Assembly: GCA_002269645.1 (NCBI GenBank)
Contig: NIVC01001483.1
Location: 1-64,000 of the forward strand
Direction of reading: 5' to 3'
DNA length: 64,000 nucleotides
Source: Macrostomum lignano
Lineage: Eukaryota
Each line of letters opens with the position of its first letter. The stretch's first letter is position 1. The notes beneath the pieces were generated by a model. It was given only the letters and a program-made list of their open reading frames with translations, was not told the DNA's origin and ran no database searches. A program made the position numbers and the translations under genes. Shown piece after piece: positions 3,838 to 35,897 of this stretch.

Positions 3838-6800
3838 CCTTGAGCATGGAATCTCAGCAATTCCCCATTGAGCCATGAAATCTCAGCAACTCCCCATTGA
3901 GCCATGGCATCTCAGCAACTCCCCATTGAGCCATGGCATCTCAGCAACTCCCCATTGAGCCATGGCATCTCAGCAACTCCCCATTGAGCCATGGCATCTC
4001 AGCAACTCCCCTTGAGCCATGGCATCTCAGCAACTCCCCATTGAGCCATGGCATCTCAGCAACTCCCCTTAAGCTTTGTCATCTCAGCAACTCCCCATTG
4101 AGCCATGGCATCTCAGCAACTCCCCTTGAGCCATGGCATCTCAGCAACTCCCCATTGAGCCATGGCATCTCAGCAACTCCCCTTAAGCTTTGTCATCTCA
4201 GCAACTCCCCATTGAGCCATGGCATCTCAGCAACTCCCCTTGAGCCATGGCATCTCAGCAACTCCCCATTGAGCCATGGCATCTCAGCAACTCCCCTTAA
4301 GCTTTGTCATCTCAGCAACTCCCCATTGAGCCATGGCATCTCAGCAACTCCCCTTAAGCCTTGTCATCTCAGCAACTCCCCCATTGAGCCATGGCATCTC
4401 AGCAACTCCCCATTGAGCCATGGCATCTCAGCAACTCCCCTTAAGCCTTGTCATCTCAGCAACTCCCCATTGAGCCATGGCATCTCAGCAACTCCCCTTA
4501 AGCCTTGTCATCTCAGCAACTCCCATTGAGCCATGGCATCTCAGCAACTCCCCTTGAGCCATGGCATCTCAGCAACTCCCCATTGAGCCATGGCATCTCA
4601 GCAACTCCCCTTAAGCTTTGTCATCTCAGCAACTCCCCTTAAGCCTAGTCATCTCAGCAACTACCCTTGAGCCATGACATCGATCAGCAACTCCCCATTG
4701 AGCCATGGCATCTCAGCAACTCCCCATTGAGCCATGGCATCTCAGCAACTACCCTTAAGCTTTGTCATCTCAGCAACTCCCCATTGAGCCATGGCATCTC
4801 AGCAACTCCCCTTAAGCTTTGTCATCTCAGCAACTCCCCCATTGAGCCATGGCATCTCAGCAACTCCCCTTAAGCTTTGTCATCTCAGCAACTCCCCATT
4901 GAGCCATGGCATCAGCAACTCCCCTTAAGCATTGTCATCTCAGCAACTCCCCTTGAGCCATGGCATCTCAGCAACTCCCCTTAAGCCTTGTCATCTCAGC
5001 ATCTCCCCTTAAGCCATGTCATCTCAGCAACTCCCCTTAAGCCATGTCATCTCAGCAACTCCCCTTGAGCCATGGCATCTCAGCAACTCCCCATTGAGCC
5101 ATGGCATCTCAGCAACTCCCCTTAAGCTTTGTCATCTCAGCAACTCCCCATTGAGCCATGGCATCTCAGCAACTCCCCTTGAGCCATGGCATCTCAGCAA
5201 CTCCCATTGAGCCATGGCATCTCAGCAACTCCCCTTAAGCTTTGTCATCTCAGCAACTCCCCATTGAGCCATGGCATCTCAGCAACTCCCCTTAAGCCTT
5301 GTCATCTCAGCAACTCCCCCATTGAGCCATGGCATCTCAGCAACTACCCCATTGAGCCATGGCATCTCAGCAACTCCCCATTGAGCCATGGCATCTCAGC
5401 AACTCCCCATTGAGCCATGGCATCTCAGCAACTCCCCTTAAGCCTTGTCATCTCAGCAACTCCCCATTGAGCCATGGCATCTCAGCAACTCCCCTTGAGC
5501 CATGGCATCTCAGCAACTCCCCATTGAGCCATGGCATCTCAGCAACTCCCCTTAAGCTTTGTCATCTCAGCAACTCCCCTTAAGCCTAGTCATCTCAGCA
5601 ACTACCCTTGAGCCATGACATCGATCAGCAACTCCCCTTAAGCTTTGTCATCTCAGCAACTCCCCATTGAGCCATGGCATCTCAGCAACTCCCCTTAAGC
5701 CTTGTCATCTCAGCAACTCCCCCATTGAGCCATGGCATCTCAGCAACTACCCCATTGAGCCATGGCATCTCAGCAACTCCCCATTGAGCCATGGCATCTC
5801 AGCAACTCCCCTTAAGCTTTGTCATCTCAGCAACTCCCCATTGAGCCATGGCATCAGCAACTCCCCTTAAGCATTGTCATCTCAGCAACTCCCCTTGAGC
5901 CATGGCATCTCAGCAACTCCCCTTAAGCCTTGTCATCTCAGCAACTCCCCTTAAGCCTTGTCATCTCAGCATCTCCCCTTAAGCCATGTCATCTCAGCAA
6001 CTCCCCTTAAGCCATGTCATCTCAGCAACTCCCCATTGAGCCATGGCATCTCAGCAACTCCCCTTAAGCCTTGTCATCTCAGCAACTCCCCTTAAGCCAT
6101 GTCATCTCAGCAACTCCCCCTTGAGCCATGGCATCTCAGCAACTCCCCCATTGAGCCAAGGCATCTCAGAAACTCCCCATTGAGCCATGGCATCTCAGCA
6201 ACTCCCCATTGAGCCATGGCATCTCAGCAACTCCCCATTGAGCCATGGCATCTCAGCAACTCCCCATTGAGCCATGGCATCTCAGCAACTCCCCTTAAGC
6301 CTATAGTCATCTCAGCAACTACCCTTGAGCCATGGCATCTCAACAACTCCCCTTAAGCATTGTCATCTCAGCAACTCCCCTTGAGCCATGGCATCTCAGC
6401 AACTCCCCTTAAGCCTTGTCATCTCAGCAACTCCCCTTAAGCCTTGTCATCTCAGCATCTCCCCTTAAGCCATGTCATCGCAGCAACTCCGCTTAAGCCT
6501 TGTCATCTCAGCAACTCACCTTAAGCCTTGTCATCTCAGCAACTCCCCTTAAGCCATGTCATCTCAGCAACTCCCCTTAAGCCTTGTCATCTCAGCAACT
6601 CCCCCATTGAGCCATGGCATCTCAGCAACTACCCTTGATCCATGGCATCTCAGCAACTCCCCATTGAGCCATGGCATCTCAGCAACTCCCCTTAAGCTTT
6701 GTCATCTCAGCAACTCCCCATTGAGCCATGGCATCTCAGCAACTCCCCTTAAGCCTTGTCATCTCAGCAACTCCCCCATTGAGCCATGGCATCTCAGCAA

Positions 6801-9800
6801 CTACCCCATTGAGCCATGGCATCTCAGCAACTCCCCTTAAGCCTTGTCATCTCAGCAACTCCCCATTGAGCCATGGCATCTCAGCAACTCCCCTTAAGCC
6901 TTGTCATCTCAGCAACTCCCCATTGAGCCATGGCATCTCAGCAACTCCCCTTGAGCCATGGCATCTCAGCAACTCCCCATTGAGCCATGGCATCTCAGCA
7001 ACTCCCCTTAAGCTTTGTCATCTCAGCAACTCCCCTTAAGCCTAGTCATCTCAGCAACTACCCTTGAGCCATGACATCGATCAGCAACTCCCCATTGAGC
7101 CATGGCATCTCAGCAACTCCCCATTGAGCCATGGCATCTCAGCAACTACCCTTAAGCTTTGTCATCTCAGCAACTCCCCATTGAGCCATGGCATCTCAGC
7201 AACTCCCCTTAAGCTTTGTCATCTCAGCAACTCCCCATTGAGCCATGGCATCAGCAACTCCCCTTAAGCATTGTCATCTCAGCAACTCCCCTTGAGCCAT
7301 GGCATCTCAGCAACTCCCCTTAAGCCTTGTCATCTCAGCATCTCCCCTTAAGCCATGTCATCTCAGCAACTCCCCTTAAGCCATGTCATCTCAGCAACTC
7401 CCCTTGAGCCATGGCATCTCAGCAACTCCCCATTGAGCCATGGCATCTCAGCAACTCCCCTTAAGCTTTGTCATCTCAGCAACTCCCCATTGAGCCATGG
7501 CATCTCAGCAACTCCCCTTGAGCCATGGCATCTCAGCAACTCCCCATTGAGCCATGGCATCTCAGCAACTCCCCTTAAGCTTTGTCATCTCAGCAACTCC
7601 CCATTGAGCCATGGCATCTCAGCAACTCCCCTTAAGCCTTGTCATCTCAGCAACTCCCCCATTGAGCCATGGCATCTCAGCAACTACCCCATTGAGCCAT
7701 GGCATCTCAGCAACTCCCCATTGAGCCATGGCATCTCAGCAACTCCCCATTGAGCCATGGCATCTCAGCAACTCCCCTTAAGCCTTGTCATCTCAGCAAC
7801 TCCCCATTGAGCCATGGCATCTCAGCAACTCCCCTTGAGCCATGGCATCTCAGCAACTCCCCATTGAGCCATGGCATCTCAGCAACTCCCCTTAAGCTTT
7901 GTCATCTCAGCAACTCCCCTTAAGCCTAGTCATCTCAGCAACTACCCTTGAGCCATGACATCGATCAGCAACTCCCCTTAAGCTTTGTCATCTCAGCAAC
8001 TCCCCATTGAGCCATGGCATCTCAGCAACTCCCCTTAAGCCTTGTCATCTCAGCAACTCCCCCATTGAGCCATGGCATCTCAGCAACTACCCCATTGAGC
8101 CATGGCATCTCAGCAACTCCCCATTGAGCCATGGCATCTCAGCAACTCCCCTTAAGCTTTGTCATCTCAGCAACTCCCCATTGAGCCATGGCATCAGCAA
8201 CTCCCCTTAAGCATTGTCATCTCAGCAACTCCCCTTGAGCCATGGCATCTCAGCAACTCCCTTAAGCCTTGTCATCTCAGCAACTCCCCTTAAGCCTTGT
8301 CATCTCAGCATCTCCCCTTAAGCCATGTCATCTCAGCAACTCCCCTTAAGCCATGTCATCTCAGCAACTCCCCATTGAGCCATGGCATCTCAGCAACTCC
8401 CCTTAAGCCTTGTCATCTCAGCAACTCCCCTTAAGCCATGTCATCTCAGCAACTCCCCTTGAGCCATGGCATCTCAGCAACTCCCCATTGAGCCAAGGCA
8501 TCTCAGAAACTCCCCATTGAGCCATGGCATCTCAGCAACTCCCCATTGAGCCATGGCATCTCAGCAACTCCCCATTGAGCCATGGCATCTCAGCAACTCC
8601 CCATTGAGCCATGGCATCTCAGCAACTCCCCTTAAGCCTATAGTCATCTCAGCAACTACCCTTGAGCCATGGCATCTCAACAACTCCCCTTAAGCATTGT
8701 CATCTCAGCAACTCCCCTTGAGCCATGCATCTCAGCAACTCCCCTTAAGCCTTGTCATCTCAGCAACTCCCCTTAAGCCTTGTCATCTCAGCATCTCCCC
8801 TTAAGCCATGTCATCGCAGCAACTCCGCTTAAGCCTTGTCATCTCAGCAACTCACCTTAAGCCTTGTCATCTCAGCAACTCCCCTTAAGCCATGTCATCT
8901 CAGCAACTCCCCTTAAGCCTTGTCATCTCAGCAACTCCCCCATTGAGCCATGGCATCTCAGCAACTACCCTTGATCCATGGCATCTCAGCAACTCCCCAT
9001 TGAGCCATGGCATCTCAGCAACTCCCCTTAAGCCTATAGTCATCTCAGCAACTACCCTTGAGCCATGGCATCTCAGCAACTCCCCTTAAGCATTGTCATC
9101 TCAGCAACTCCCCTTGAGCCATGGCATCTCAGCAACTCCCCTTAAGCCTTGTCATCTCAGCAACTCCCCTTAAGCCTTGTCATCTCAGCATCTCCCCTTA
9201 AGCCATGTCATCTCAGCAACTCCCCTTAAGCCATGGCATCTCAGCAACTCCCCATTGAGCCATGGCATCTCAGCAACTCCCCTTAAGCCTTGTCATCTCA
9301 GCAACTCCCCTTAAGACATGTCATCTCAGCAACTCCCCCTTGAGCCATGGCATCTCATCAACTCCCCCATTGAGCCAAGGCATCTCAGCAACTCCCCATT
9401 GAGCCATGGCATCTCAGCAACTACCCTTGATCCATGGCATCTCAGCAACTCCCCATTGAGCCATGGCATCTCAGCAACTCCCCTTAAGCCTATAGTCATC
9501 TCAGCAACTACCCTTGAGCCATGGCATCTCAGCAACTCCCCTTAAGCATTGTCATCTCAGCAACTCCCCTTGAGCCATGGCATCTCAGCAACTCCCCTTA
9601 AGCCTTGTCATCTCAGCAACTCCCCTTAAGCCTTGTCATCTCAGCATCTCCCCTTAAGCCATGTCATCTCAGCAACTCTCCTTAAGCCATGGCATCTCAG
9701 CAACTCCCCATTGAGCCATGGCATCTCAGCAACTCCCCTTAAGCCTTGTCATCTCAGCAACTCCCCTTAAGACATGTCATCTCAGCAACTCCCCTTGAGC

Positions 9801-10008
9801 CATGGCATCTCATCAACTCCCCCATTGAGCCAAGGCATCTCAGCAACTCCCCATTGAGCCATGGCATCTCAGAAACTCCCCATTGAGCCATGGCATCTCA
9901 GCAACTCCCCATTGAGCCATGGCATCTCAGCAACTCCCCATTGAGCCATGGCATCTCAGCAACTCCCCCATTGAGCCATGGCATCTCAGCAACTCCCCCA
10001 TGGCATCC
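3838..10008 (+). repeat. 28-30 bp minisatellite (~210 units) with higher-order duplications
   Basis: Unit GAGCCATGGCATCTCAGCAACTCCCCATT alternates with AAGC(C/T)TTGTCATCTCAGCAACTCCCC(A/-)TT. Rare variants recur at an offset of about 2.34 kb. Confidence 0.97.
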
Positions 10009-10468
10009 CAGCTTTGAGTAAAAACCACTTCCTTTATGTAAATATACACGTACATATACATGTCGATGCTGCAGAAACTCATGTGTGTAGTTCTACGAGT
10101 ATTTACTAGAATCTCTTGTACTGCCAAGCACGTGACGTTCAGCTCCAAAACTTCCCGTGAGAAAGCAGCAGGCCTGAGATCTGTGAGCCGCTTCTCACTG
10201 CTGCCACTACTGAGGGCTCTGCGGCCTCACTCTGGCGGCCTCAGCAACTCGGCTGCTGTCACGATCGCAGCTCCACAGTGAAACGTGACTCGGACAGCCA
10301 CATCGGACCTGCAACTGCAGCAGAGCCTCAGCTGAGGCCGCGCCACTCAATCTGGCGAGATCCCACGCCCTCCACGCATTCCAGCAGCAGCTCGGGTGGA
10401 TAAATGCCGACTCGCAATGCCTGCTCAAATTTGCAACTCAAAGTGGCCGCTCCAATCAGCGACTCCCA

Positions 10469-11278
10469 TTGGCGACTCAGCAAATGCAGCACCGCCAGCT
10501 ACTCGCTGCCTGCCTCGCCGCAGCCACTGCAGCTCTGGTGCTCACCGGCGCCTCTGCTCAGTGTCCCGGACACGGCTCTGCACCTGACAGAGGCGTCACC
10601 CCACCTGTGGACGGCCTCGTGGCTGCGTTCGATTTCAGGAGGGGCCTGCACAACCTGGTGGACCCGCGCGCCTTTGCCATCGAGGACCAGTTTGGCGTGG
10701 AGAGGTCGGCAGAGGACGGGGCCTGCTTCAAGCAGAATTCAAGTGCCAGATACAGGGAGTTCTACAATGTCGGAGCTCCCATGGCATTCAATGAGTCGAT
10801 CTGGAACTCAGCAGAGTGGACCATGTACTTCAGGCTGACTCGGAGCAGCGGCAGCTGGGTTCGTTTTCTGTCGGTTCCGAGCGACCATTTGCGCCCGGAT
10901 GGGGTGCTAAACGTTTATGCTGTCATTGATCAATATTCTAGAAACAGGTTTAGATTTTATGTTGGGCAACATGACCTTCGAAGCCGGCATTATAACGAGC
11001 ACCACTTCTACGGATCGGGCTGTGCTGGCAGCTGGTGCGACATTCGGCTGGCAATGAAGAATCACATTTTGGATTCTCCTGCCATCGGATGGCCGCTGAG
11101 TTCTGATTATCAGAAGTTTACTGATTTTGTTAATGAACTGGGACTGCAGCAGCTGCAGATTGGAAATCTTTATCCATCTTCTGGTTCCCAGCGGCTCTGC
11201 GTGAGGTGCTTCGGGGTCGCCCGCAGGCAGCTGAGCGCCCATGAGGTGCGGCAGGCGATGTCGGCTTTCTGCCCCTGA
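10469..11278 (+). CDS. Secreted lectin-like protein A (269 aa): signal peptide plus ConA/LamG-like jelly-roll domain, intronless
   Basis: Hydrophobic signal (LLAACLAAATAALVLTGASA). GLVAAFDF and FGVARRQLSAHEV resemble the N- and C-terminal motifs of LamG/ConA-like domains. Clear paralogue at 18951-20639. Intact ORF with GC-rich codons. Confidence 0.8.
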   Translation: MATQQMQHRQLLAACLAAATAALVLTGASAQCPGHGSAPDRGVTPPVDGLVAAFDFRRGLHNLVDPRAFAIEDQFGVERSAEDGACFKQNSSARYREFYNVGAPMAFNESIWNSAEWTMYFRLTRSSGSWVRFLSVPSDHLRPDGVLNVYAVIDQYSRNRFRFYVGQHDLRSRHYNEHHFYGSGCAGSWCDIRLAMKNHILDSPAIGWPLSSDYQKFTDFVNELGLQQLQIGNLYPSSGSQRLCVRCFGVARRQLSAHEVRQAMSAFCP

Positions 11279-11989
11279 GACTGCGGCTGCAAGCAGTGGG
11301 CCTGGCCACTAAAATGCATTACGTAGTCGTTTTGTCTTCTTCCGAAAGTCTGTCGGTTTGTCTGTCTGTCCAGTCTGGTTTCTGTCTGTTTATCTTGACA
11401 AATTAAATGGTGCCTCAGAGCCAAGTTGGTGACGCTCTTCCTGAGTGTCCCGAATGTACGAAATTACAATATACGATCTTAGCTGCATATACAGCATTGC
11501 AAAAACTTTGATTGCCCTCAGCAATGATACCGGTGTAGCTGATGAAGTTCAAGGAAGCTAGGCACACTTGTGACCTTGGCCATTGTTCAAAATGTCTATG
11601 GTAATTACGATAAGGTAATGACATTCAAGCAATGACCGGAAAACGAACGCTGAGATTAAAAAAGTAGTCTATGTTTGTAAGTGTGGACTTCGCCCCCACA
11701 CCCCATTCGCCCTTGCCACTCGGATCCTGATGGTCAAATTGAATAATGAAGCTAGCTGGAAGTGGCGATAGCCGCTCATGTCTATGGCCATTACCATGAA
11801 TTCTCACTTCCTGACAACCCCCATTAACTTAAACCCTCGCTTCGTATTACATGTAGCTGCATTAATTGAATTGTCTAAGGCCGAAACAGACGGAAATGTA
11901 AATGACGATGCTTACACTTCATGTCAATGGCCAGTCCCATAGAATGCATTGGTCAATCAGTTGTCTATGGCTAAAATTGGCGGCCACTG

Positions 11990-12146
11990 GCCATTTTTCG
12001 CCCAGATGAGGTGCTGCCACCAAATTAATACCTTTATGCTGGCATTAATAAAACTTCTGGGGACAGGTTTGAATTTTATGTTGGGGAACATGACCTTGCG
12101 ATCCAACATTATAACGAGCACTACTTCGATGAATTTGGCTGTGACG
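11990..12146 (+). pseudogene. Lectin-like paralogue C, left half (variable core of the ConA-like domain)
   Basis: Translates RPDEVL..*..LYAGINKTSGDRFEFYVGEHDLAIQHYNEHYFDEFGCD, homologous to gene A RPDGVLNVYAVIDQYSRNRFRFYVGQHDLRSRHYNEHHFYGSGCA. In-frame TAA, and no 5' part. Confidence 0.8.
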
Positions 12147-13569
12147 CTTCCGACTGGCGCGCAGGGTCCGCCCTCTTGTGGGATGTCGGCTCCTCCGCGG
12201 GATTGAGTTGCCAGCACTCTCCAGAGGCGGCAGAAGGGGCGGCTTTCGCACTCCTGGCCGTTCCTCCGCTTTGCGCTTGAGAAAAGCTTTGTAGCGAGCA
12301 ATGCTACGGGCCTTCTTTTTAGAGGTCTGAGGTCCGCCGTCCTGTTGTCCAGCCACTTCGGTATTGTCCTGAGTGGCGACAGAAGCTGACTAAGAGTCAC
12401 CGGAGGTCCCGGTGTTGCGAATGTCCGGCTGGGCGGCGATACCAACCGCAGTTGGCGCTCCAGCAGCCTCGGACGTGTTGCAAGTAAATGAATACTCCAT
12501 GAGTCGCTGAAAGGTGAATGGGGACTAGAGGTGAGAAGCTGCTGGGCCGAAACCCCAAACCCAACAGCCAGCCAAAATATAGCGACCCGGGGTGCTTAGG
12601 CCCTTACCGGCCCGACCGCTAGCAACCGAGAAACTACCCGGCTAAGAGCCCGGCTTGGAGAGACCATACGCTCGTAGGCCGAACCAAAGGAACATCAGCG
12701 CGGTACTACACTGGTAGGCTGTCCGCATCCTGTTAAGGTCAGAGGGTGATACCTGTTCTTCAGAGCCGTGGCCAGAGGTACCTGATACGCACAGGTTCAC
12801 TTCCGGACGGAGCCCGTACCCAAATCGGCCAAGACAGAAGCCAAGGCCACGGATGGGGTGCAGGTGTAGGATACAATTCCGATAATTCTGTGCTGTGGTC
12901 GGTCTGCACTTTGCGGCCGATCTGGTCTGATGGCGTTGGTTGCTCTTTGTGGCAAAGTCATCCAGTTCATGCCAGGTCTTCATGTTTGGATTTTCCAGCT
13001 TTTTGCTTTCTTCTGATTGAAGAACGAGCTTAGCCAGACCATATTCAAGCTCTCTTGCCATGTTCGAAGTTACTCACCTTGTTAGTTTGTCCAGCCGATA
13101 CCATGTTGGCCTGCGCTCGTGAAGAGGGTCGCTGCTCCTCGAACGATGTTTGAGGTCCAGTCACCTTGCACCCGAAATCACACATTGGAAAGCGCGCGTT
13201 TCTGTGGGTGCATTTTTATGCCTCCTGTGTTCCACAGGTGCCATGCAGTCTCATTTAGTAAGATTAGTAGGTTTCCTTATTCTCATGGTGAAACACTGAT
13301 GCCGGTGCCTTGCAAGGTCACATCCCAGCTCGATGACGCTTTCTTTACTATCTGTCCGAGTCTCGCTGAGCCCAGGTTTGCCCGCTGCACGTTCCACATC
13401 GCGATTCTCACTTTCTTCTGGTTCCAGATTCTTTGCGCAGCTTCTAAACGTTGTTTGTTCCTTTATTTTACGGTGTTTCTCTCTCTCTTCGCGTTTCGAC
13501 GCCTGTTCCTTGCCCTTCTCTGCTCACTGGTTCCCGGTCCAGGTTTGCAATTTGGTTCGTATTCGCGAT

Positions 13570-13821
13570 CCGCTAACTCTTCCGCTAACTCTTCCGCTAA
13601 CTCTTCCGCTAACTCTTCCGCTAACTCTTCCGCTAACTCTTCCGCTAACTCTTCCGCTAACTCTTCCGCTAACTCTTCCGCTAACTCTTCCGCTAACTCT
13701 TCCGCTAACTCTTCCGCTAACTCTTCCGCTAACTCTTCCGCTAACTCTTCCGCTAACTCTTCCGCTAACTCTTCCGCTAACTCTTCCGCTAACTCTTCCG
13801 CTAACTCTTCCGCTAACTCTT
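13570..13821. repeat. Perfect 12-bp tandem repeat (CCGCTAACTCTT)x21
   Basis: 21 identical units counted. Confidence 0.97.
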
Positions 13822-15212
13822 CAGTCTTCCGTGTGCCGCGTCGCTGCCACCCGATAGGCTTTCCTCTAACCCTAAGCCGTCGGTCATATCGTCCTCTGAT
13901 GTCGGTGTGTCGTCTTCGCCAGAAGGGGCTCTGTGGCTATCGTCCAGCTGGTCGTTAAGTACTTCTCTTCTTCTGTGTGAGTTGATCGGTCTTCCAGGAC
14001 AATGTCAGAAATTTCGTTAATCCTGTCCTGTCCCGTCCTTGATAGCGTCTCTGCCTTTCGCACAAATTTTCCAGTTCTCTTATTAGACTTCGACAGACAA
14101 TTTCGCGCGGTAGCTAATAAGTGAGCAGATTCAGCAGGTATCAAGTAGGTTGAGCAATGGCTAGAGTTACGATCATGCGCTTCCGGCAGGTTGCAGTGAT
14201 GAGCCATTGTACAATAATTCTTAATAAGCAATAAAATTCTACTCTTCCGGCTAAAGCAATTTCAATAATATCAGTCGGCACATATGGCTGGATTTGACAG
14301 GCCTTTTTGCCTCAATTTTAGCGGACAGCACCTGGGATCAAGTCAACAGGTCATTTGCTGTGCCACATGACAAGGCTGGTTCCTATAGCCAAGCCACAAC
14401 GTCTCAAACATCTGGTTCTGTTGACGCCAGCACCCTACTAGCATTGCGTGATGCTTTCTAGTCCGCTCTCTGTCACGCTGTAGGCTCGTATGACTGCCTA
14501 GCAGACATCGCAGTCCAGAGTTTTCATCGTGGACTCCGTCTGACGAGGCAACCAGACAGCGGTTAAAATCAATATCGCCTGCATATGCACCGATCCGTCT
14601 AGCTTAACTACGCGGTTTATTATTTCTATTTTTATAAATATTTTTATAGCTAGTAAATTAACGAACACAATAATCAACACATTGCACTGCAACTCAGCCT
14701 TCCGCCACACGTCGTCCTCCAGCTCTGGTTCTTAGCCGCTCATGTCTTCTTGGCTAGATGGTTGGAAGACACTGCCGATCTTCCATGAAATCCTTCCTGA
14801 GACTCCGGAAAGTCAGGGAACCAGTATAGGCCACAAACAAGTGCGCTGTTCCGAATTACCAATAGGTCTTGTGTAACTTTAAAACTCTTCTGTTCGACCA
14901 CAAGTTTGTTCGTCCGCCAGCTGGAAATTTGTTCTTCTTTTTACCCGTTTATATTTATATTGTAAAAACTGTCTCCTGCACAATGAACTCCTGCTGAACT
15001 CCATGGTCTTGCTGTCCTTGGGCTGATCGGCTGATTGTTGATGTGGGTACTGTTGTGATCGTTGATGCAGCTGCTGGTGGTGGGGTGTGCCTAGCTACGT
15101 CGGGTGCCTTGGACAAAGGCTAGCGTCCACAACGTTGGGGCCTACTAAACTTTGGTCCCCTCGCTCCAGGCTCACATTGGGTCCTCTCGTTGCCGTCCAG
15201 CCTCGTCCAGGT

Positions 15213-15320
15213 GACACGACCAAGTGACACGACCAGGTACGACACGACCAGGTGACACGACCAGGTACGACACGACCAAGTGACGCGACCAGGTACGACA
15301 CGACCAGGTGATACGACCTA
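15213..15320. repeat. Short 13-15 bp tandem repeat (GACACGACCAGGT-type), ~7 units
   Basis: Directly visible; may lie in the 5' UTR of the adjacent LINE remnant. Confidence 0.8.
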
Positions 15321-16216
15321 GCCTATCCCCGTTCCTATACTTATGAGCAATTTCTTATGGCTCATAATTTATATTGAGATCGAATAGTAGACACGTTATT
15401 TCAGTTTCAAGTTTTGTAACTAAATTGAACTTATAGTATCGATACTTTCTAAAACAAAAAAAACTTTTTCAACCTTTTTTAAAACTCTTCAACTAGTAAA
15501 AGTTTCGAAAAAATTAACTGCAAGAATTTCAAAATGCTTTTCAAGCCAAAGAGCTGCAGATAATTGAAAATTAAGGTTTTATGTATCGAAGTTACGAGCT
15601 ATTTTCTATTTTATTTTTTAACTAAATTAATTCAGTGGAGAAAAGCCCTGGTCGGTTAAACTGATTGATTGAACTGATGGTTGTATTAAAGTTGTACTTT
15701 TGTGCCCAATTTTTAACTGATTGCAATGAGCAATTTAACTGAGGGATAGGATGCCCCTCAGCCCAATGAAGCCCAATGATCATGGGATCTCGTGCTTGGG
15801 TTTCAAAAATAGCTGAAGTATAATTGCAAAAATTTAAATTAAACTCACAACAATTATTACAAACAATTTGTCATTGGTTAGTTGTCTATATGATTTCTAC
15901 CTATATGATTCTATATGATATTGAACGAAGCTTAGTTTACTTATACATGTAGGACTTTATAACGGCATTTTCTATGCCTGAAGCCCTCCCGCTTGGAAAA
16001 TGTTGTGCCGATGCCTTTTACTCGTAGTTAAAACCATCCCAGAAGTCGGAAAAAATTAGTTAAATTGAAATTTACGAGTTATACCCGAATTTGTCTACTG
16101 CTGCAGTAGCGCGCAAAGATTTTTTAGCAGTAGTGTGACCCAAGTAGGAAATTCGAGATTTAGGAATTTAGTAAGATTCAGTAAGTTACGAGCATAGTTT
16201 ATTTTTTAATTATAAA

Positions 16217-17139
16217 TACGTTTATTAATTTCCCGGAAAAGTTCACTTCTGGTGGTTGCATCTGCACGAAATTTTACCTGCAGCAACTGCAGTCTGTAAT
16301 CACTTCTCAACATAACTTCCTGTGGCGCCTTGCTGCAGCGCTGCGTCGGAGGAAAATGGCCGCCATCATTTTGCCGATGCTGCGATTGCGACGAAACTTG
16401 AGAGGAGCATCTTCGTCGTTGATAACCCACTGCCGACTCTGCTCCTTGGTCTCATGGGTCGTAGAAGTAGACCGAAGGTTCTTTGCCAGTGAGGATGTTA
16501 TCCACCAACTTTCAGCGGCCTCCGTCAAACCTTGGCCGCCATGAGGTCGGCGAGCTCAACGCGGGCTTGCATCTGGTCAGGGCTGAGCTGGTGGGGCACC
16601 CAGCGAGCGGACAGCTTCGTCATTTCAAGGTGCTGGTGCAGGATCTTAATGATGGTGGAATCCGACACCCCGACGAGCTGCTCCAACCAGCCAATCGCCA
16701 CTCACCGATCTTCGTCTAAATGGCGTCGAACAGCAGCAACGACTCCGTCGGACACAGTCGAACTCGGCCGCCAATCACGAGGATCGTCGTCCAGAGTGGC
16801 CGAGCCGCAGCGGAAGCGTGCAAACCACTCATACAGCATCGACTGGGATGGCGCTTGATCCTGAAGAGCCTCACGCAGCGTCTGGAGTCATGTGGCTGCA
16901 GAGCTGCCCAGCCGAAACTGGACCGGGATTGCCACTCGCCTGTCGCGGTCAGTCATCTGTGGCAGCAGGGCGGCACGTTTTCGGCCAAACTTTGGACATT
17001 GCAGCGCATCGTTGCGACCGATTGAGTTGAAATTTTACAAGCGAACGTTGAACATCCAACTCCAACTGCTGGTTAAGTTTCGTTTGATTTTCGCATTTTT
17101 AAGCTGCATTTTCCGGGAACTTAATAAGCACCGCTCGTA
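16217..17139 (-). mobile_element. Internally deleted mariner (DD34D-type) transposon
   Basis: The minus strand encodes an HTH region, LSARWVPHQLSPDQ (WVPHEL motif), VDNILTGKE (first catalytic D mutated), YDP-ETKEQSRQW, GKMM and a C-terminal GSYVEK*. Imperfect TIRs: TTATTAA(T/G)TTCCCGGAAAA at about 16222-16240 and its complement at about 17109-17128. Confidence 0.85.
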
Positions 17140-17227
17140 GCCTTAGAAAGAGTCGGAATACAGAATAGAATTATCTTTCCTTTCCTTTCCTTGCATTTCC
17201 TTAATCATATCAACAAGCACGACTCCA

Positions 17228-17469
17228 ACGGCAGCTGGTCCGACATTCAACTGGCAAAAAGAACCGCATTTTGGATTCTCCTGCCATCGGACGGTCGCTG
17301 GGCGTTCAATATCGGAACTGGACTGATGGGACTCATGAAGTGGGACTGCAGCAGCTGCAGCTCGGAAATTATTATTTACTTCTGTGTGAGGTGCTTCGGA
17401 GTCACCCGCAGGCAGCTGAGCGCCGATGAGGTGCGGCAAGCGATGTCGGCCTTCTGCCCCCGAGTATAA
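17228..17469 (+). pseudogene. Lectin-like paralogue C, right half (C-terminus of the ConA-like domain)
   Basis: GSWSDIQLA-NRILDSPAIGRSLGVQYRNWTDGTHEVGLQQLQLGNY-CVRCFGVTRRQLSADEVRQAMSAFCP with two frameshifts. It resumes exactly where 11990-12146 stops. Confidence 0.85.
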
Positions 17470-17701
17470 GGCTAGAATTTGCGTCACTGAGCATCCGGAT
17501 CCAGCACCGGCTGCAACCGCGATAACAGCATCCGGTTGAGCAGCCTCGCAGCGCAGGACTGAAGGCAGAGGCCTCTGTGCTCATTCAGGATTGTGGTAGC
17601 TACCCGGCTTCTTTGGAACGTGACGACCCATACCAATGGGAAACTTGGCGGTTTATGCCGCTATACACTGTGCACCTTGTGTGAGCGTGTGTATGAGCAC
17701 A

Positions 17702-17870
17702 GGGGTTATAGCCTAATGGTTCGATCGTTGGAATCACGACGGAAAGGTCGGGGGTTCGATTCTCGACACACTCGGAACAATTTGTGTCCTTGAGCAAGAC
17801 ACTTAACTCTGCATTGCTTCAGTTAGTCCAGCTGTAAAATGGGTGCCAGCATTAGCTGGGGTAATTGAGG
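17702..17870 (+). mobile_element. tRNA-derived SINE with CORE-like central domain
   Basis: A-box TAGCCTAATGG (~17709) and B-box GGTTCGATTC (~17753). These are followed by TGTGTCCTTGAGCAAGACACTTAAC...CTGTAAAATGGG, which resembles the CORE domain of MIR-like SINEs. Confidence 0.75.
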
Positions 17871-18320
17871 GTGAGTGTGGCGCCCCCCCCCCTCAGTCCT
17901 TGGACTGAACAGCCGTACGCAGCCTGCAGATGCGCTGCGCAATGGCTGCGGCTGAGCTGTCGGTTGCACAACTGCCTAGCAATGCCCACATTTGCATATG
18001 TGCTGTGTACGAGTACCCTATAACCGACTGCTCCGCTCTCCTGGTGTTATGACGCTCTGGCAAAGAAAGAACGCCTTGCCTTAGCCTAACAAGTTTCCCA
18101 TAAAGAATTACTTAAGCGGGCGGCTTACCAGAGGGGGGCAGAAGGCTCTACTGGCTAAGCCCTCAACCAAGCCACAGGGCCAGCCAATCAGAACCCCGCC
18201 CGGGGCAGGGTGCAGCACCCGGCACGCACGCCAACCCCCCCCAGCCCCCCAAAGTGCACCGTGCCCTGCCAAACCAAGGGCACATGCACTACACCTGTAT
18301 GCAGCTAGTAAGATCGTATA

Positions 18321-18788
18321 CTTGGCAACAGTCAAAAGTTCCAACCCTCCAAGCGAAATAAAAAATTCCTCACTTATTGCGACAACTTTTCACCCACAAT
18401 TCAACTCTCAAGTTACGCAACTGAGTCACCGCGAGGAAGGGAAAATTAATAGAATCAATAGCTCGTACTATTGATGAACGCCAGTCGCACAAAGTCATAA
18501 CGCGCTTAGTAACGCGTGTGGGATCCCCTCGCACGCAGAAAGTCCTAGGGAAGCTGCTGCCAAGCGTTTCAATGGCATGACGGAGCTCCGCAACATGCTG
18601 CGGTGGATTCTCTTATCGACTGCTGCGTTTTAGGAAGTCCCAGACATGCTCGATGGGATTCATGTGTGGGGACCATTAAGCAGACCCAAGCCGACCCCAG
18701 TGGCAGTAAGCTTTGCGCGTACCGTAATTACTCGCAATAAGTGAAAAAATCATCTCGCTTCGTGGTTAGAGCTTATGACTGTTGCTGA
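18321..18788. mobile_element. Non-autonomous Tc1-like element (MITE), same family as 55615-57131
   Basis: Degenerate TIRs CTTGGCAACAGTCAAAAGTT / GCTTATGACTGTTGCTGA flanked by TA. The interior is colinear with 55615-55725 and 56600-57131. Confidence 0.8.
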
Positions 18789-18950
18789 TAATGCATTGTA
18801 TTTGATTTATCGATAACTGATTGGGTACATTCAAAGACTTTGGAGAAACACCACCAAGGCATGATAGCCATATAACCACCATCAAACTGAACTGATTCGT
18901 CAAGCCATACGGTAAGAATGAGTCAAAATCTTCAGCATATTCGCAGCTCC

Positions 18951-20639
18951 TCAGGGGCAGAAGGTCGACATCGCCTGACGCACTTCGTCGGAGCTCAGCC
19001 GCCTGCGGGCGACTCCGAAGCACCTCAGGCAGAGTTTCCGAGCTACAGAATAAAACGGCGACCCGAATCCAACACGGAGCTGCTGCAGTGCCAGTGCATC
19101 CGCATCGAATGTCGAGTTCCAATATTGAACTCTCAGCGGCTCTCTGATGGCAGGAGAATTCAAAATGCCATCCTTGATTGCCAGCCGAATGTCGCACCAG
19201 TTGGCAGCACAGCCCGATCCGTTGAACTCGTGGTTGTTGTTATGCACGGTGAAATGCGTTGAGTTCCCGAGGTCGCGTTGCAGAACGTTTAAAACGAACT
19301 GCTCAGCACTGGAGGAATAGAGCTCAGCACGGAGGCTTGAGTACGAATTCGGATCGGAGTGCTCGCTGCGCACAGACAGAAACTCGACGCCACTTTTATT
19401 GCCTACGGTAAGCCTAAAGTACATTGTGTACTCTGATGTACTGAGAATCGACTCATTGAATGCCACGGGAGCTCCAACATTGTAGAACTCCCTGTATCTG
19501 GCACTTGAATTCACCTTGAAGCAGGCCCCGTCCTCTGCCGACCTCTCCACGCCGAACTGGTCCTCGATGGCGAAGGTGCGCGGGTCCAACAGGTTGTGCA
19601 GGCCCCTCCTGAAATCGAACGCAGCCACGAGGCCGTCCACCTGCGGCGGCGGCGACGCAGACGGCGGTGGCGGGGAGTTGCCGTCCGACGCCTCCGTCTT
19701 GCACACGAACCTGTGCCTGCTGTGGCACCTGTCGCTGCGCAGTCGACCAGCTGACAGCGTGACGCAGTTCACAGTCCAGTCCGCACTGTCCGGGTGTCCA
19801 GTCTCCCATGCGGGCAGCTTGTTGTCGTGTTTCCCTGAGAAATCCGTCCACTGGTAGCAGAGCTCGCGACCCGCACTGTCAGGGAAGCAGGGGTTCAGCT
19901 TGATGAGGCCGAGCCACACCGAGTCGAGCAGCTCTGCCGACTCGCAGCTGTCGATTCCGAAGCTGAGCTTGTTCACAAAGTCCAGCTCAGACTGGGTGAG
20001 CACCGACGCCAGCTGCGACGAGTTTCGCTGGCAGTAGAAGTTGGCCTCGTTGAAGTTGGCCTCAAACTGCGGCATCACGTAGCACTGCTCGTCGTGCAGC
20101 CACCAGCCGCTGGGACATCGGCCCTTCGACCGCCACCACCAGTCGACGAGACTGCTGGATTTCGCGCTCAACTTGCACACAAACGGGTGCCGCTCGTGAT
20201 ACAGCGAGTTGAGCCACCACTCACCGTCACTTCGGATCAGAGGCTTGTGAACGCTGTCCAGCTGAGAGAAGTTGTGTCTCTCGAAGCTCCCTACGCCGCC
20301 GCCGTCCGTCCACCTGTAGCTTGTAGGGTCGGCCAGACGGTCGAGGTCGGTGCCGAACAAACCGATCCAGGCGTCTCTGCAGTGAGACAGTCGGCCTACC
20401 AGTCGGTTCTCTTGCTCACTTTGGATGGACGCGAGCTGAGCCCGGTGAGACAGACACGTCTGTTCGGCCTGAAACCAGTAGTTCGGCTCGCTGAACCACT
20501 TGTAGCATGAGTGAGCTCGGTGTGTCCAGCCGTGTCCGGGACACTGAGCAGAGGCGGCGCCGGTGAGCAGCAGAGCTGCAGTGGCTGCGGCGAGGCAGGC
20601 AGCGAGTAGCTGGCGGTGCTGCATTTGCTGAGTCGCCAA
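18951..20639 (-). CDS. Secreted lectin B (562 aa): signal peptide, two C-type lectin domains, Pro-rich linker, ConA/LamG-like domain; intronless
   Basis: CTLD1 has C-Y-x-W, AEQTC, LASI, WIGL and FVCK. CTLD2 has CPSGW, EANFYC, LASV, VWLGL, W..GHPD..NCV and C..RHRFVCK. Linker PPPPSASPPP. The C-terminal domain is shared with gene A. Confidence 0.9.
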   Translation of the reverse strand: MATQQMQHRQLLAACLAAATAALLLTGAASAQCPGHGWTHRAHSCYKWFSEPNYWFQAEQTCLSHRAQLASIQSEQENRLVGRLSHCRDAWIGLFGTDLDRLADPTSYRWTDGGGVGSFERHNFSQLDSVHKPLIRSDGEWWLNSLYHERHPFVCKLSAKSSSLVDWWWRSKGRCPSGWWLHDEQCYVMPQFEANFNEANFYCQRNSSQLASVLTQSELDFVNKLSFGIDSCESAELLDSVWLGLIKLNPCFPDSAGRELCYQWTDFSGKHDNKLPAWETGHPDSADWTVNCVTLSAGRLRSDRCHSRHRFVCKTEASDGNSPPPPSASPPPQVDGLVAAFDFRRGLHNLLDPRTFAIEDQFGVERSAEDGACFKVNSSARYREFYNVGAPVAFNESILSTSEYTMYFRLTVGNKSGVEFLSVRSEHSDPNSYSSLRAELYSSSAEQFVLNVLQRDLGNSTHFTVHNNNHEFNGSGCAANWCDIRLAIKDGILNSPAIREPLRVQYWNSTFDADALALQQLRVGFGSPFYSVARKLCLRCFGVARRRLSSDEVRQAMSTFCP

Positions 20640-21094
20640 TGGGAGTCGCTGATTGGAGCGGCCACTTTGAGTAGCAAATTTGAGCAGGCATTTCGAGTCG
20701 GCATTTATCCACCCGAGCTGCTGCTGGAATGCGTGGAGGGCGTGGAATCTCGCCAGATTGAGTGGCGCGGCCTCAGCTGAGGCTCTGCTGCAGTTGCAGG
20801 TCCGATGTGGCTGTCCGAGTCACGTCTCACTGTGGAGCTGCGATCGTGACAGCAGCCGAGTTGCTGAGGCCGCCAGAGTGAGGCCGCAGAGCCCTCAGTA
20901 GTGGCAGCCGTGTGAGAAGCGGCTCACAGATCTCAGGTCTGCTGCTTTCTCACGGGAAGTTTTGGAGCTGAACGTCACGGGCTTGAGAGTGCAGGAGATT
21001 CAAGTACATAAAGCTACACATGTTTCCTTTTACATGCCAGTTTTTTGCTGCATCAACATGTACGAGCGTATAAAGACTGCGGCTTCTATGCAAA

Positions 21095-21431
21095 GCTCAG
21101 ATGCCATGGCTCAATGGGGGAGTTGCTGAGATGCCATGGCTCAGTGGGGAGTTGCTGAGATGCCATGGCTCAGTGGGGAGTTGCTGAGATGCCATGGCTC
21201 AGTGGGGAGTTGCTGAGATGCCATGGCTCAGTGGGGAGTTGCTGAGATGCCATGGCTCAAGGGGGGAGTTGCTGAGATGCCATGGCTCAATGGGGAGTTG
21301 CTGAGATGCCATGGCTCAATGGGAGGGGGGTTGCTGAGATGCCATGGCTCAATGGGGAGTTGCTGAGATGCCATGGCTCAATGGGGAGTTGCTGAGATGC
21401 CATGGCTCAATGGGGGAGTTGCTGAGATGCC
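21095..21431 (-). repeat. Inverted copy of the 29-bp minisatellite (~11 units), upstream of lectin B
   Basis: GGGGAGTTGCTGAGATGCCATGGCTCAAT is the reverse complement of the 3838-10008 unit, with the same array/unique junction CATGGCATC(CC/TG)AGCTTTG. Confidence 0.95.
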
Positions 21432-21451
21432 AATTGGCCAGGTCAGGCCAG

Positions 21452-21520
21452 GTCGGTCCAGGCGTCTCTGCAGCGAGACAGTCGGTCTACCAGTCGGTTC
21501 TCTGGCTCACTTTGGATTGA
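21452..21520 (-). pseudogene. Isolated C-type lectin domain fragment (copy D)
   Basis: Reads SIQSEPENRLVDRLSRCRDAWTD versus gene B SIQSEQENRLVGRLSHCRDAWIG. Nucleotide match to about 20365-20430. Confidence 0.75.
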
Positions 21521-21995
21521 CTCCGAAGAGAGATTCAAAAGTAATCTTTTCAGCGATTTTTTTGTTAACGACCTATTCAGAACATGTAGTAATCAAGTAA
21601 ACTTTTCTTTGCCTGCGCTGCAGCTAATAAAGACACGCCAGCGTCAGGGGCCTCTGTTCCTACCTGGACTGGGCAACAAAATCCGGCTGCAGAACAGCAC
21701 AAAAAGTGTCCTTGGCTCAGTTTCAACTTTTCATCCAATTTTTTATGACAGGCAATAGAGAAAGTGGCGCAGCTGAGGGTGGGGGGCATGCGGTGTCTCG
21801 GAAATGTCATCGAGAGCTGCTGTGCAGTGTGCAGGCGAAATCTTGGCTTCGGCACGGGAACACGCGGCTTTAGAGAAATTTCGAATTTGAAATGGCAAGC
21901 GGCCGGTGCGAGTCCCGCCGCGCACTCGATCCGGGCTGGCTGATGAAGAAGCGAAGAGGCTGGCCGCCCCCGCATGGAAGTTGGGCCGAGGAGCA

Positions 21996-22710: not shown

Positions 22711-24827
<2,117 letters not shown>

Positions 24828-25253: not shown

Positions 25254-25745
<492 letters not shown>

Positions 25746-26144
25746 TCTATCCCTACCCAACAAAGATTATTTATGCCTTGGCGACAACCAGGACGGCAGG
25801 CTCGGATAATCAAATCAGCCGTCTTGTGGTCACCGGCCAGCCAGGCAGAGTGCAGCAGTGGCAAGATGAGGCCGCTCAGCATCCTCGCATAGGCTATTAA
25901 TTTCATCCTCCGGCCCTCTGAGCCTGACTCGATCCCAATTTTCTATCACACGCTGTCATCGAGTTTGAGTCAAGTTTGTTATGGGTGCATCTGCCGTGCA
26001 GCAAACGTTTGCCTTTGCTCAAAGCAGTGGCCTTTCATTGCGTGCACAAGTGATTAATTAGACTTGAAAATTCGTTTCCAAATTTAACCTGTAGAAATTG
26101 TCTCTATGAGGGTATCAAGATCTCACGAATTGCGCCAGGATATC

Positions 26145-27293
26145 TATAGTTGGGTTTCAGGATGTCTATAGTTGGGTGTCAGGTCTATAGTTGGGTTTTA
26201 GGATGTCTATAGTTGGGTGTCAGGTCTATAGTTGGGTTTCTGGATGTCTATAGTTGAGTGTCAGGCTGTCTATAGTTGAGTGTCAAGATGTCTATAGTTG
26301 AGTGTCAGGATGTCTATAGTTGACTGTCAGGATGTCTATAGTCGATCGTGTCAGGATGTCTATAGTTGGATTTCAGGATGTCTATAGTTGGATGTCAGGA
26401 TGTCTATGTTGACTGTCAGGATGTCTATAGTTGAGTGTCAGGATGTCTATAGTTGAGTGTCAGGCTGTATATAGTTGAGTGTCAGGATGTCTATAGTTGA
26501 GTGTCAGGATGTCTATAGTTGAGTGTCAGGATGTCTATAGTTGAGTGTCAGGATGTCTATATTGAGTGTCAGGATGTCTATAGTTGAGTGTCAGGATGTC
26601 TATAGTTAAGTGTCAGGATGTCTATAGTTGAGTGTCAGGGTGTCTATAGTTGAGTGTCAGCATGTCTATAGTTGAGTGTCAGGGTGTCTATAGTTGAGTG
26701 TCAGGATGTCTATAGTTGAGTGTCAGAATGTCTATAGTTGAGTGTCAGGATGTCTATAGTTGAGTGTCAGAATGTCTATATTGAGTGTCAGGATGTCTAA
26801 AGTTGAGTGTCAGGATGTCTATAGTTGAGTGTCAGGATGTCTATAGTTGAGTGTCAGGATGTCTATAGTTGAGTGTCAGGATGTCTATAGTTGAGTGTCA
26901 GGATGTCTATAGTTGAGTGTCAGGATGTCTATAGTTGAGTGTCAGGATGTCTATAGTTGAGTGTCAGGATGTCTATAGTTGAGTGTCAGGATGTCTATAG
27001 TTGAGTGTCAGGATGTCTATGTTGAGTGTCAGGATGTCTATATTGAGTGTCAGGGTGTCTATGTTGAGTGTCAGGATGTCTATATTGAGTGTCAGGATGT
27101 CTAATTGAGTGTCAGGATGTCTAGTTGAGTGTCAGGATGTCTATATTGAGTGTCAGGATGTCTATATTGAGTGTCAGGATGTCTATATTGAGTGTCATGA
27201 TGTCTATAGTTGAGTGTCAGGATGTCTATATTGAGTGTCAGGATGTCTATAGTTGAGTGTCAGGATGTCTATATTGAGTGTCAGGATGTCTAT
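26145..27293. repeat. 22-bp minisatellite GTCTATAGTTGAGTGTCAGGAT, ~52 units
   Basis: Directly visible; lies between the converging 3' ends of MRLC and APBB. Confidence 0.97.
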
Positions 27294-27798
27294 AAATGTA
27301 TATCTAGGAGATTGAAATTTAGGGCTACCTGAAAACATCAGTATGGGACATGCATATTGAGTTGCATATCTATTGGCCGGTTGCAGTCATTGGCCAATGA
27401 AATATTGATTAAAATAGCCTTACATCTGCATGTATAGATAAAGTATTCATAATGGCACGGATGACACTGCATCAGTAAAGCGGCACTATTCAGCCATTTG
27501 AAACTCAAATCATAACTAATAAAACCGATGGCTATGCAAGAAGTGGCACTCATGATGGAGCCGCTGGACTATTGGACCAACAGGCGACTGAAGGGCACCG
27601 CATCAGCCAGCGACAACAGCGATGACTACGCGGCAGGTGCTTCATCATCGGTGCCAATCGATGCTCAAGGATGCTGCAGAGATGACAGGAGCGGCAGAAG
27701 GATCGTCTGCTCAGCTCTGGTGCTGCTGCTCCTGCTCACTCTGCTGCTGCTGTTACTGCTGCAGAGGTCAGTAGAGGCCCGAATTAGCGGCGGCAACA

Positions 27799-35025: not shown

Positions 35026-35038
35026 TGGATAGATAGAC

Positions 35039-35101
<63 letters not shown>

Positions 35102-35145
35102 CAGATAGATAGATAGATAGGTAGTAGATAGTTAGATAGATAGAC

Positions 35146-35184
<39 letters not shown>

Positions 35185-35286
35185 CAGATAGATAGATAGA
35201 CAGATAGATAGATAGACAGATAGATAGATAGACAGATAGATAGATAGATGGATAGATAGATAGATAGATAGACAGATAGATAGATG

Positions 35287-35319
<33 letters not shown>

Positions 35320-35344
35320 GTAGATAGATAGATAGATAGATAGG

Positions 35345-35389
<45 letters not shown>

Positions 35390-35437
35390 GGATAGATAGA
35401 TAGACAGATAGATAGATAGACAGATAGATAGATAGAC

Positions 35438-35495
<58 letters not shown>

Positions 35496-35496
35496 G

Positions 35497-35527
<31 letters not shown>

Positions 35528-35536
35528 GTAGATAGG

Positions 35537-35581
<45 letters not shown>

Positions 35582-35582
35582 G

Positions 35583-35623
<41 letters not shown>

Positions 35624-35644
35624 GTAGATAGATAGATAGATAGG

Positions 35645-35721
<77 letters not shown>

Positions 35722-35722
35722 G

Positions 35723-35769
<47 letters not shown>

Positions 35770-35770
35770 G

Positions 35771-35811
<41 letters not shown>

Positions 35812-35812
35812 G

Positions 35813-35897
<85 letters not shown>

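Follow-up and report, generated by a model that had tools for sequence, protein, structure and literature searches.

The window analysed here, a stretch of 64,000 nt from the genome of Macrostomum lignano (positions 1 to 64,000 of contig NIVC01001483.1, assembly GCA_002269645.1), carries two genes, A and B, which are probably two members of an M. lignano-restricted family of secreted, disulfide-rich proteins. In this family a conserved front of C-type lectin-like domains (CTLDs) is followed by a variable C-terminal domain (C-domain), and gene A has lost the front by deletion. In every copy, as comparison shows, the signal peptide with its upstream ~100-300 nt and the CTLD pair have been kept near-identical, evidently by gene conversion, and the C-domains are old, divergent and themselves mosaics exchanged between copies. 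Gene A, as the junction in its DNA shows, evidently arose from a copy with a repeat linker in which a stretch of ~1 kb was lost in frame between CPGHG and the last repeat. The signal peptide, the Cys-rich modules and the Thr/Ser/Pro stalk are consistent with secretion of these proteins as extracellular glycoproteins.

Gene A (10484..11278, forward strand), the CTLD-less member of the family, is an intact single-exon coding sequence (CDS) of 264 aa plus stop, and gene B (18951..20624, reverse strand) is an intact single-exon CDS of 557 aa plus stop. Inspection of the open reading frames (ORFs) of the window finds the two genes convergent, both intronless and both unbroken, with their true ATGs at 10484 (A) and 20624 (B); the boundaries 10469 and 20639 given earlier are mechanical TTG ORF starts that lie 15 nt upstream. 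The signal peptide of gene A (10484..10558, forward strand; MQHRQLLAACLAAATAALVLTGASA) was read by eye from its hydrophobic core and A-x-A motif, with predicted cleavage after ASA, and its synonymous divergence (dS) from all paralogues is 0. Both N-termini consist of MQHRQLLAACLAAATAAL followed by (V/L)LTG(A)ASA and, past the cleavage site, by QCPGHG, and up to QCPGHG the signal peptides of A and B are one substitution and one Ala codon apart.

Beyond the signal peptide, gene B continues through CTLD1 (20160..20546, reverse strand, approximately residues 27-155), CTLD2 (19692..20120, reverse strand, approximately residues 169-311) and a Pro-rich linker into a C-domain of 229 aa with six cysteines (18954..19640, reverse strand). 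In gene A the segment 10559..10606 (forward strand) holds a QCPGHG remnant of CTLD1 (10559-10576), the junction (between 10576 and 10577) and a single linker repeat, SAPDRGVTPP (10577-10606), after which the C-domain follows directly (10607..11275, forward strand; 223 aa, six cysteines). The C-domains of the two genes are 62% identical in amino acid sequence over 229 aa (E 1e-89). Mature B contains 20 cysteines and mature A seven, and because of this odd number the first CTLD cysteine is left in A without an obvious partner. The first-pass annotation had described intronless, convergent genes with a common signal peptide and QCPGHG, two CTLDs in B and neither in A, a run in A from CPGHG via a short linker into the common C-domain, and a potentially unpaired first CTLD cysteine; the ORFs, the protein alignment, the Pfam matches and the cysteine count agree with it on all of these points.

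The single-exon structure of gene B recurs in a transcript-based GenBank model (569 aa, 1710 nt) on a near-identical haplotype contig, L002, and the window's own copy is on record as a partial 577-aa model (P0008) on a contig of 280,862 bp in GCA_002269645.1. BOX15_Mlig019923g2 of M. lignano, which is 98% identical to gene B, is among the best matches. The GenBank annotation of this species was built from transcript assemblies only, and transcripts below 0.5 reads per kilobase per million (RPKM) or overlapping repeats were discarded (PMC5730564). Since its model comes from a transcript-only annotation, gene B is transcribed. Both A and B have two upstream ATGs in another frame, 14-80 nt ahead of the start codon (10404-10483 and 20625-20704). 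The transcript-based models begin downstream of those ATGs, 36-60 nt before the start ATG and beside an AG, a position that could represent a trans-splice acceptor or a proximal start site.

The CTLD assignment rests on a match of gene B to Pfam PF00059 (Lectin_C) in two stretches, with 70.7 bits against a cut-off of 22.6 (E 2.1e-19), of which CTLD2 is the best; gene A has no Lectin_C match. CTLD1, also matched by Lectin_C, is of the long form with the C0-C0' hairpin cysteines; by inspection it keeps C0, C0', C1 and C4, lacks the C2-C3 pair and has no EPN or WND motif. CTLD2 has all six canonical cysteines, in register with CTLD2 of DEC-205 in a HMMER alignment that also places HPD on the EPN/QPD position and LRS on the WND position, in line with the non-canonical sugar motifs noticed at first reading. 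The CTLDs of gene B belong to the CTLD superfamily but are not classical Ca2+-dependent C-type lectins, and because the Ca2+/sugar site is absent the pair is more likely to consist of protein-binding or Ca-independent binding modules. The designation "dual lectin", proposed at the outset, is accordingly not established.

The best sequence matches of CTLD2 among solved structures are DEC-205/Ly75, the macrophage mannose receptor, snaclecs and Reg/lithostathine (E 9e-7 to 1e-3), which share the long-form CTLD with an N-terminal Cys hairpin. These multi-CTLD or small secreted CTLD proteins, many of which likewise lack Ca2+-dependent sugar binding, differ from gene B in having no ConA-like C-terminal domain, identity to them is low, and in gene B the C2-C3 disulfide of CTLD1 is missing as well. 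Within M. lignano, the adhesive protein Mlig-ap1 is, like gene B, secreted and CTLD-containing, but it is a giant protein with KR-rich regions and vWD and EGF modules (PMC6410801). It was not among the homologues of gene B found.

Every homologue found is an M. lignano protein, and the family is, on the evidence of these searches, restricted to the M. lignano lineage, as the first-pass annotation had supposed. At least six distinct paralogues are spread across five contigs. Full-length copies elsewhere include L3 (600 aa) and the tandem pair L4a (666 aa) and L4b (630 aa), all intact, together with L1 (614 codons), which has a single in-frame premature stop 39 codons ahead of its end. At the L1 locus (L001, ~9434-11290 of NIVC01000349.1), the database protein P0003 (BOX15_Mlig011059g2, 390 aa) is a truncated model of a full-length member; the conserved tail stays in frame past the premature stop, which is the only defect of the copy. 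On L004 (10001-32718 of NIVC01001205.1), the model BOX15_Mlig001413g3 spans 22.7 kb over two intact tandem copies, L4a and L4b (~10121-12133 and ~30811-32715), and appears to join both. Across full-length members the linker is Pro/Thr/Ser-rich and contains 0-15 PDGGVTS[AT] repeats: in L1, L3, L4a and L4b, 7-15 of them join the CTLDs to the C-domain, gene B being the exception. P0005, a paralogue at greater distance, has a mucin-like tail behind a CTLD pair that shares 47% identity with that of B, and because the pair occurs there with another tail it is the older module. No well-known or named family with this architecture was found, in agreement with the initial impression, and none is known to us.

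None of six gene identifiers of the family was found in the main texts of the literature searched. Nor do they, in sets of five or six, occur in the supplementary lists of M. lignano papers, among them germline/neoblast, seminal-fluid and positional expression studies, lists that may be incomplete or use other identifiers. A C-type lectin mentioned in PMC12732829 was set aside as a different gene, with IgV plus CLECT domains.

Variation between members is concentrated in the C-domain, where a conserved framework made up of the first ~78 residues, the last ~22 residues and a GSGCxGSWCDIRL segment surrounds two hypervariable blocks. The blocks, which flank the conserved GSGCxGSWCDIRLAMK..ILDSPAIG segment, lie at ~10835-11020 and ~11090-11203 in gene A and at ~19412-19212 and ~19142-19026 in gene B. 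In the unsaturated trio A, L4a and L4b, the ratio of nonsynonymous to synonymous change (omega) is low at both ends of the domain, at 0.16-0.5 over the first 76 codons and 0-0.15 over the last 22, and rises to 0.93-1.67 across the 125-130 codons of the core between them, with 1.03 for L4a-L4b, both of which are intact and full-length. The hypervariable blocks alone give 1.05-2.04, a figure biased upward by their having been picked by hand for variability. Two cautions attach to an interpretation in terms of diversifying selection, this bias and the fact that an omega near 1 in the core could mean relaxed constraint instead. The earlier suggestion that the family diversifies by domain loss holds for gene A, a domain-loss derivative whose linker is one PDGGVTS[AT] repeat; diversification takes place mainly in the core of the C-domain.

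The origin of gene A can be read from its DNA. Comparison with parental-type copies places the deletion junction between GGACACGGC and TCTGCACCTGAC, with 1-2 nt of microhomology, and the junction-spanning sequence specific to A is GGACACGGC joined to TCTGCACCTGACAGAGGC. The SAPDRGVTPP of gene A corresponds exactly to the last PDGGVTS[AT] linker repeat of the paralogues. Since both the junction and the last linker repeat match, gene A is a ~1-kb in-frame deletion derivative of a repeat-linker parent that retains the variable domain and, ahead of it, the signal peptide and upstream region. Its C-domain is closest to that of L4b (78% aa identity), followed by L4a (73%).

On balance, gene A is probably a working gene. 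On the branch leading to A, polarised with L4a and L4b, the framework has accumulated nine synonymous and seven nonsynonymous substitutions, where ~32 nonsynonymous ones would be expected under neutrality (binomial p=0.003), which corresponds to an omega of ~0.2. The pairwise framework omega of A and L4b (0.16) does not exceed the value of 0.30 for L4a-L4b, both intact. The reading frame survived the deletion, as did the signal peptide, and the ~290 nt upstream of A are 98% identical to the same region of the transcribed gene B. Over a comparable divergence, the adjacent A-like pseudogene (psi, described below) gained at least four frameshifts and an insertion of 5 kb, and A none.

The alternative is that gene A is a young, non-functional deletion derivative in which no stop has yet arisen, whether as a dead copy or as a deletion allele specific to one haplotype. 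This reading is less probable, though a serious competitor, and several observations tell against a working gene and in its favour. The transcript-based annotation includes B but lacks A in both haplotypes, and the exact A protein is absent from a collection of 15 billion proteins. The former is weak evidence, in view of the expression and repeat filters of that annotation (PMC5730564). The copy of A on L002 is 100% identical, with no gene called there, and this identity says nothing about selection, since the two haplotypes do not differ over 7.4 kb that include A. The odd number of cysteines and the position of A beside a decayed A-like pseudogene, with another CTLD fragment nearby, also fit a dead copy. 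A stop-free ORF was dropped as proof of function: in simulations, a frame that takes 57 neutral substitutions has a 0.13 chance of gaining no stop, a value that decides nothing and leaves the open frame plausible under neutrality. Finally, the signal of purifying selection could pre-date the deletion, the age of which is unreadable because the 5' region is continually homogenised. One apparent sign of decay was rejected, namely the loss of third-position bias in A (22:16:19 in the triple A/B/L1), since the intact L4a shows the same and the framework is constrained. This codon-position pattern is a trait of the variable core that intact genes have too. With all of these points taken together, a working gene A remains the favoured interpretation.

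With regard to its structure, the C-domain is tentatively assigned, from predicted models and at the level of the fold only and nothing finer, to the ConA-like jelly-roll beta sandwiches. Sequence searches gave no relative. None of five C-domains has a Pfam match even at E<=10, and no match in the Protein Data Bank (PDB) was obtained by phmmer or by profile at the same limit. Neither phmmer, run against 1.84 billion representative proteins, nor a profile search covering 5.8 billion clusters yielded a relative outside M. lignano; the sole match from elsewhere, P0007, was rejected as a repetitive junk ORF. There was no profile match to the LamG, pentraxin or galectin families, and hhalign of the C-domain alignment against human C-reactive protein, a pentraxin, gave a probability of 0.06%.

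Two AlphaFold2 models, built from the same five-sequence alignment with B and A as respective queries, are all-beta, with 12-13 strands and a C-terminal helix. Their confidence is low: the predicted local distance difference test (pLDDT) is 50 and 47, and the predicted template-modelling score (pTM) 0.49 and 0.47. In Foldseek searches of the PDB with these models, all of the top 50 matches have the ConA-like lectin/glucanase fold (E 8e-5 to 2e-2, template-modelling (TM) scores 0.2-0.42, probabilities up to 1.00). The B model matches first sialidase lectin domains, the binding domains of clostridial neurotoxins with their lectin-like jelly roll, galectin-8N and CBM40, and the A model PL7 lyases, GH16 glucanases, CBM40, galectins, the L-type lectin Emp47p and the LG domains of Gas6 and agrin. 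The C-domain resembles the ConA-like superfamily (LamG/LG, galectins, L-type lectins, CBM40, sialidase lectin domains, GH16 and PL7), the sole fold class returned for either model, in its size (~200-230 aa) and predicted all-beta make-up. It differs from the families of that superfamily in its six cysteines, its predicted C-terminal helix and the absence of any sequence or profile similarity, so that the family within the superfamily is not assignable. The ConA/LamG identification made at first reading is plausible at the level of the fold but, at these low pLDDT and TM scores, not established, and the sequence searches in Pfam and the PDB lend it nothing.

The weak point of the assignment is its dependence on models with a pLDDT of 47-50 derived from five sequences. 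The C-domain could instead have a new all-beta fold, the Foldseek matches being generic beta-sandwich noise from poor models, as the low pLDDT and pTM values, the small alignment and the failure of the LamG, pentraxin and galectin comparisons would suggest. This is unlikely, since models from different query sequences both return only ConA-like members in the top 50. The N-terminal strand GLVAAFDF, the segments WTMYFRL and WCDIRLAMK and the C-terminal CFG..RRQLS..EV also resemble a LamG-type pattern, a likeness that serves as a lead only. Very improbable, within the ConA-like fold favoured here, is an enzymatic role, in which the C-domain would be a glycan-cleaving GH16 glucanase or PL7 alginate lyase targeted by the CTLDs, for instance in the digestion of algal polysaccharides: M. 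lignano is cultured on diatoms, and the gene A model finds its best matches, at E 8e-5 to 4e-4, among PL7 alginate lyases and GH16 beta-glucanases, but TM is only 0.36-0.40 on a model of pLDDT 47, the B model matches lectin-type members first, a core omega of ~1 is ill-suited to a conserved catalytic cleft, and a regular-expression scan of four C-domains found no GH16 (E-x-D-x(x)-E), PL7 (QIH, RTELR) or galectin (WGxExR) motif.

The contrast between the two halves of the full-length genes, seen at synonymous sites, is the chief new finding. In the constant region (signal peptide plus CTLD pair, 315 codons), the proportion of synonymous differences (pS) is 0.014-0.034 for all ten pairs, from four contigs, and is alike for all of them regardless of the distance between their C-domains. 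In the C-domain, dS is 0.17-0.23 within the group A/L4a/L4b, 0.45-0.7 between subgroups and saturated against L3 (>2.8). The synonymous divergence of the two halves of the same genes thus differs 10- to 100-fold, which argues for gene conversion of the 5' half in old paralogues and not for recent duplication. Over the first ~60 codons of the C-domain, nucleotide identity drops from 97-100% to 30-60%, and in the last 18 codons it is back at 85-94%; between loci, 99-175 nt upstream are held in common and nothing downstream. Segments have also been exchanged within the C-domain, because the nearest relative of A there switches in blocks, from B to L1 and back to B (A/B/L1 informative sites, runs test p=5e-5). 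A rival scenario, in which whole genes duplicated very recently and their 3' halves then hypermutated, with no 5' gene conversion, would suit the recent polyploidy of M. lignano, which has many duplicated blocks of at least 95% identity (PMC5730564), but it is highly improbable in the face of the unequal synonymous divergence, the dissimilar 3' flanks and short common upstream stretch, the switching relationships along the C-domain and the uniform pS of the constant region.

A and B form the arms of an inverted duplication, in which 10193-10552 and 20556-20915 are 98% complementary (repeat I1, 360 nt). The left arm (10100..10552) comprises the upstream region, 5' untranslated region (UTR) and signal peptide of A, with I1 (360 nt, 98%) and a second repeat, I14 (99 nt, 92%); the right arm (20556..21010), with I1 and I14, comprises those of B. 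Both arms are flanked on the outside by the same 28-nt satellite, present directly upstream of A as an array of 216 copies (3838..9998, 6.2 kb) and upstream of B as a short inverted copy of the 28/29-nt unit (21095..21432, 0.34 kb). Between the genes lies the pseudogene psi in two pieces, a 5' piece (12030..12143, forward strand) matching nt 428-541 of the A CDS with 79% identity and a 3' piece (17227..17469, forward strand) matching nt 544-795 with 78% identity. Because the two pieces are contiguous in A, they represent one copy split by an insertion of ~5.09 kb (12144..17226), in which no terminal repeats were found. Psi carries frameshifting indels of 1, 2, 1 and 17 nt, has lost its stop codon and has no 5' part. 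Beyond B, an isolated CTLD1 fragment (21449..21521, reverse strand; 24 codons, 93% nt identity to the constant region) is the remnant of another copy. Given the inverted arms, psi and this fragment, the locus is a small birth-and-death cluster.

The L002 contig has the same convergent pair and is 98.3% identical to the window over 12.5 kb. From 10000 to ~17400 the two are essentially identical (2 mismatches), and from ~17500 onwards they are 2-3% divergent. So abrupt a change may mark where haplotypes or subgenomes have recombined or undergone gene conversion, or it may have arisen in assembly. Inside the psi insertion, a perfect microsatellite of 21 copies of the 12-nt unit TCCGCTAACTCT (13569-13822) differs in length by 144 nt (12 units) from the otherwise identical L002.

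The rest of the window is rich in repeats. Approximately 29% of the 64 kb (~18.8 kb) is tandem repeat. It includes no fewer than 15 distinct minisatellites of 18-32 nt (among them those at 26136-27294, 29947-30810, 32092-33201, 36473-37505, 38474-39348 and 39709-40657) and long tetranucleotide arrays of (ATCT)n at 22730-23545, (CTGT)n at 25254-25743 and (GATA)n at 35028-35970. Many spurious long ORFs arise from this repetition. A 440-aa ORF at 30728-32050 (reverse strand) contains a PTB/PID domain (E 9e-13), and a matching gene is annotated in L002. The segments 40782-41570 and 47203-48030 (both reverse strand) look like exons of a BAR/RhoGAP/SH3 gene of the GRAF/oligophrenin type, with matches to RhoGAP (E 5e-23), SH3 (E 8e-9) and BAR_3 (E 4e-7, just under the Pfam cut-off); between them lie repeat arrays and a 60-nt minisatellite ORF (44758-45630). 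A remnant of the pol/gag region of a long-terminal-repeat retrotransposon occupies ~58700-61400 (reverse strand), with a reverse transcriptase-associated RNase H domain at 59709-60218 (E 3e-19) and, near it, integrase-like and zinc-knuckle-like ORFs that have no Pfam matches. Scans of the window for tRNAs and Rfam families found nothing.

As to function, the combination of constant CTLDs with a length-variable stalk and a variable, putative jelly roll suggests a division of labour, the C-domain being the specificity part and the CTLD pair the common part. The products would be extracellular binding proteins in which the variable jelly roll confers specificity and the constant CTLD pair has a common anchoring or effector role. 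Gene A, if expressed, would yield a short, secreted single-domain version with one unpaired cysteine, in effect the specificity module by itself, which could act alone or compete with full-length members. A more far-reaching proposal would make the family a germline-encoded constant/variable recognition system, with a gene-converted CTLD pair, a glycosylated stalk of variable length and diversifying, shuffled ConA-like blocks for which psi-type cassettes are possible donors. Such a system would serve immune or partner/gamete recognition, with A as a variable-only decoy or competitor. We regard it as a long shot.

Lineage-specific, fast-diversifying secreted recognition families are known from other animals, including the FREPs of snails, the VCBPs of amphioxus, the CLEC expansions of nematodes and the CTLD proteins of Drosophila seminal fluid (Acp29AB). 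Like the family described here, they are multi-copy, secreted and species-restricted, combine conserved and variable parts with lectin-type modules, and exchange sequence between copies by gene conversion or recombination. They differ from it in domain combination, the M. lignano family joining a CTLD pair to an orphan putative jelly roll. Gene-converting, fast-evolving secreted lectin-like families are thus already known, and what is new here is the orphan variable domain and the natural domain-loss member.

Lineage-specific lectin-like expansions are common in invertebrates, and the locus opens no long-standing question; it is a tidy case of gene-family evolution and not a new kind of system. 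If the interpretation is correct, it would add a new sequence family within the ConA-like fold, a clear invertebrate case of a secreted family composed of a homogenised constant module and a fast-evolving variable module, and a naturally occurring variant that consists of the variable domain only. Since RNA interference and transgenesis exist in M. lignano, the roles of the constant and variable modules in immunity, reproduction, mucus or feeding would be directly testable.

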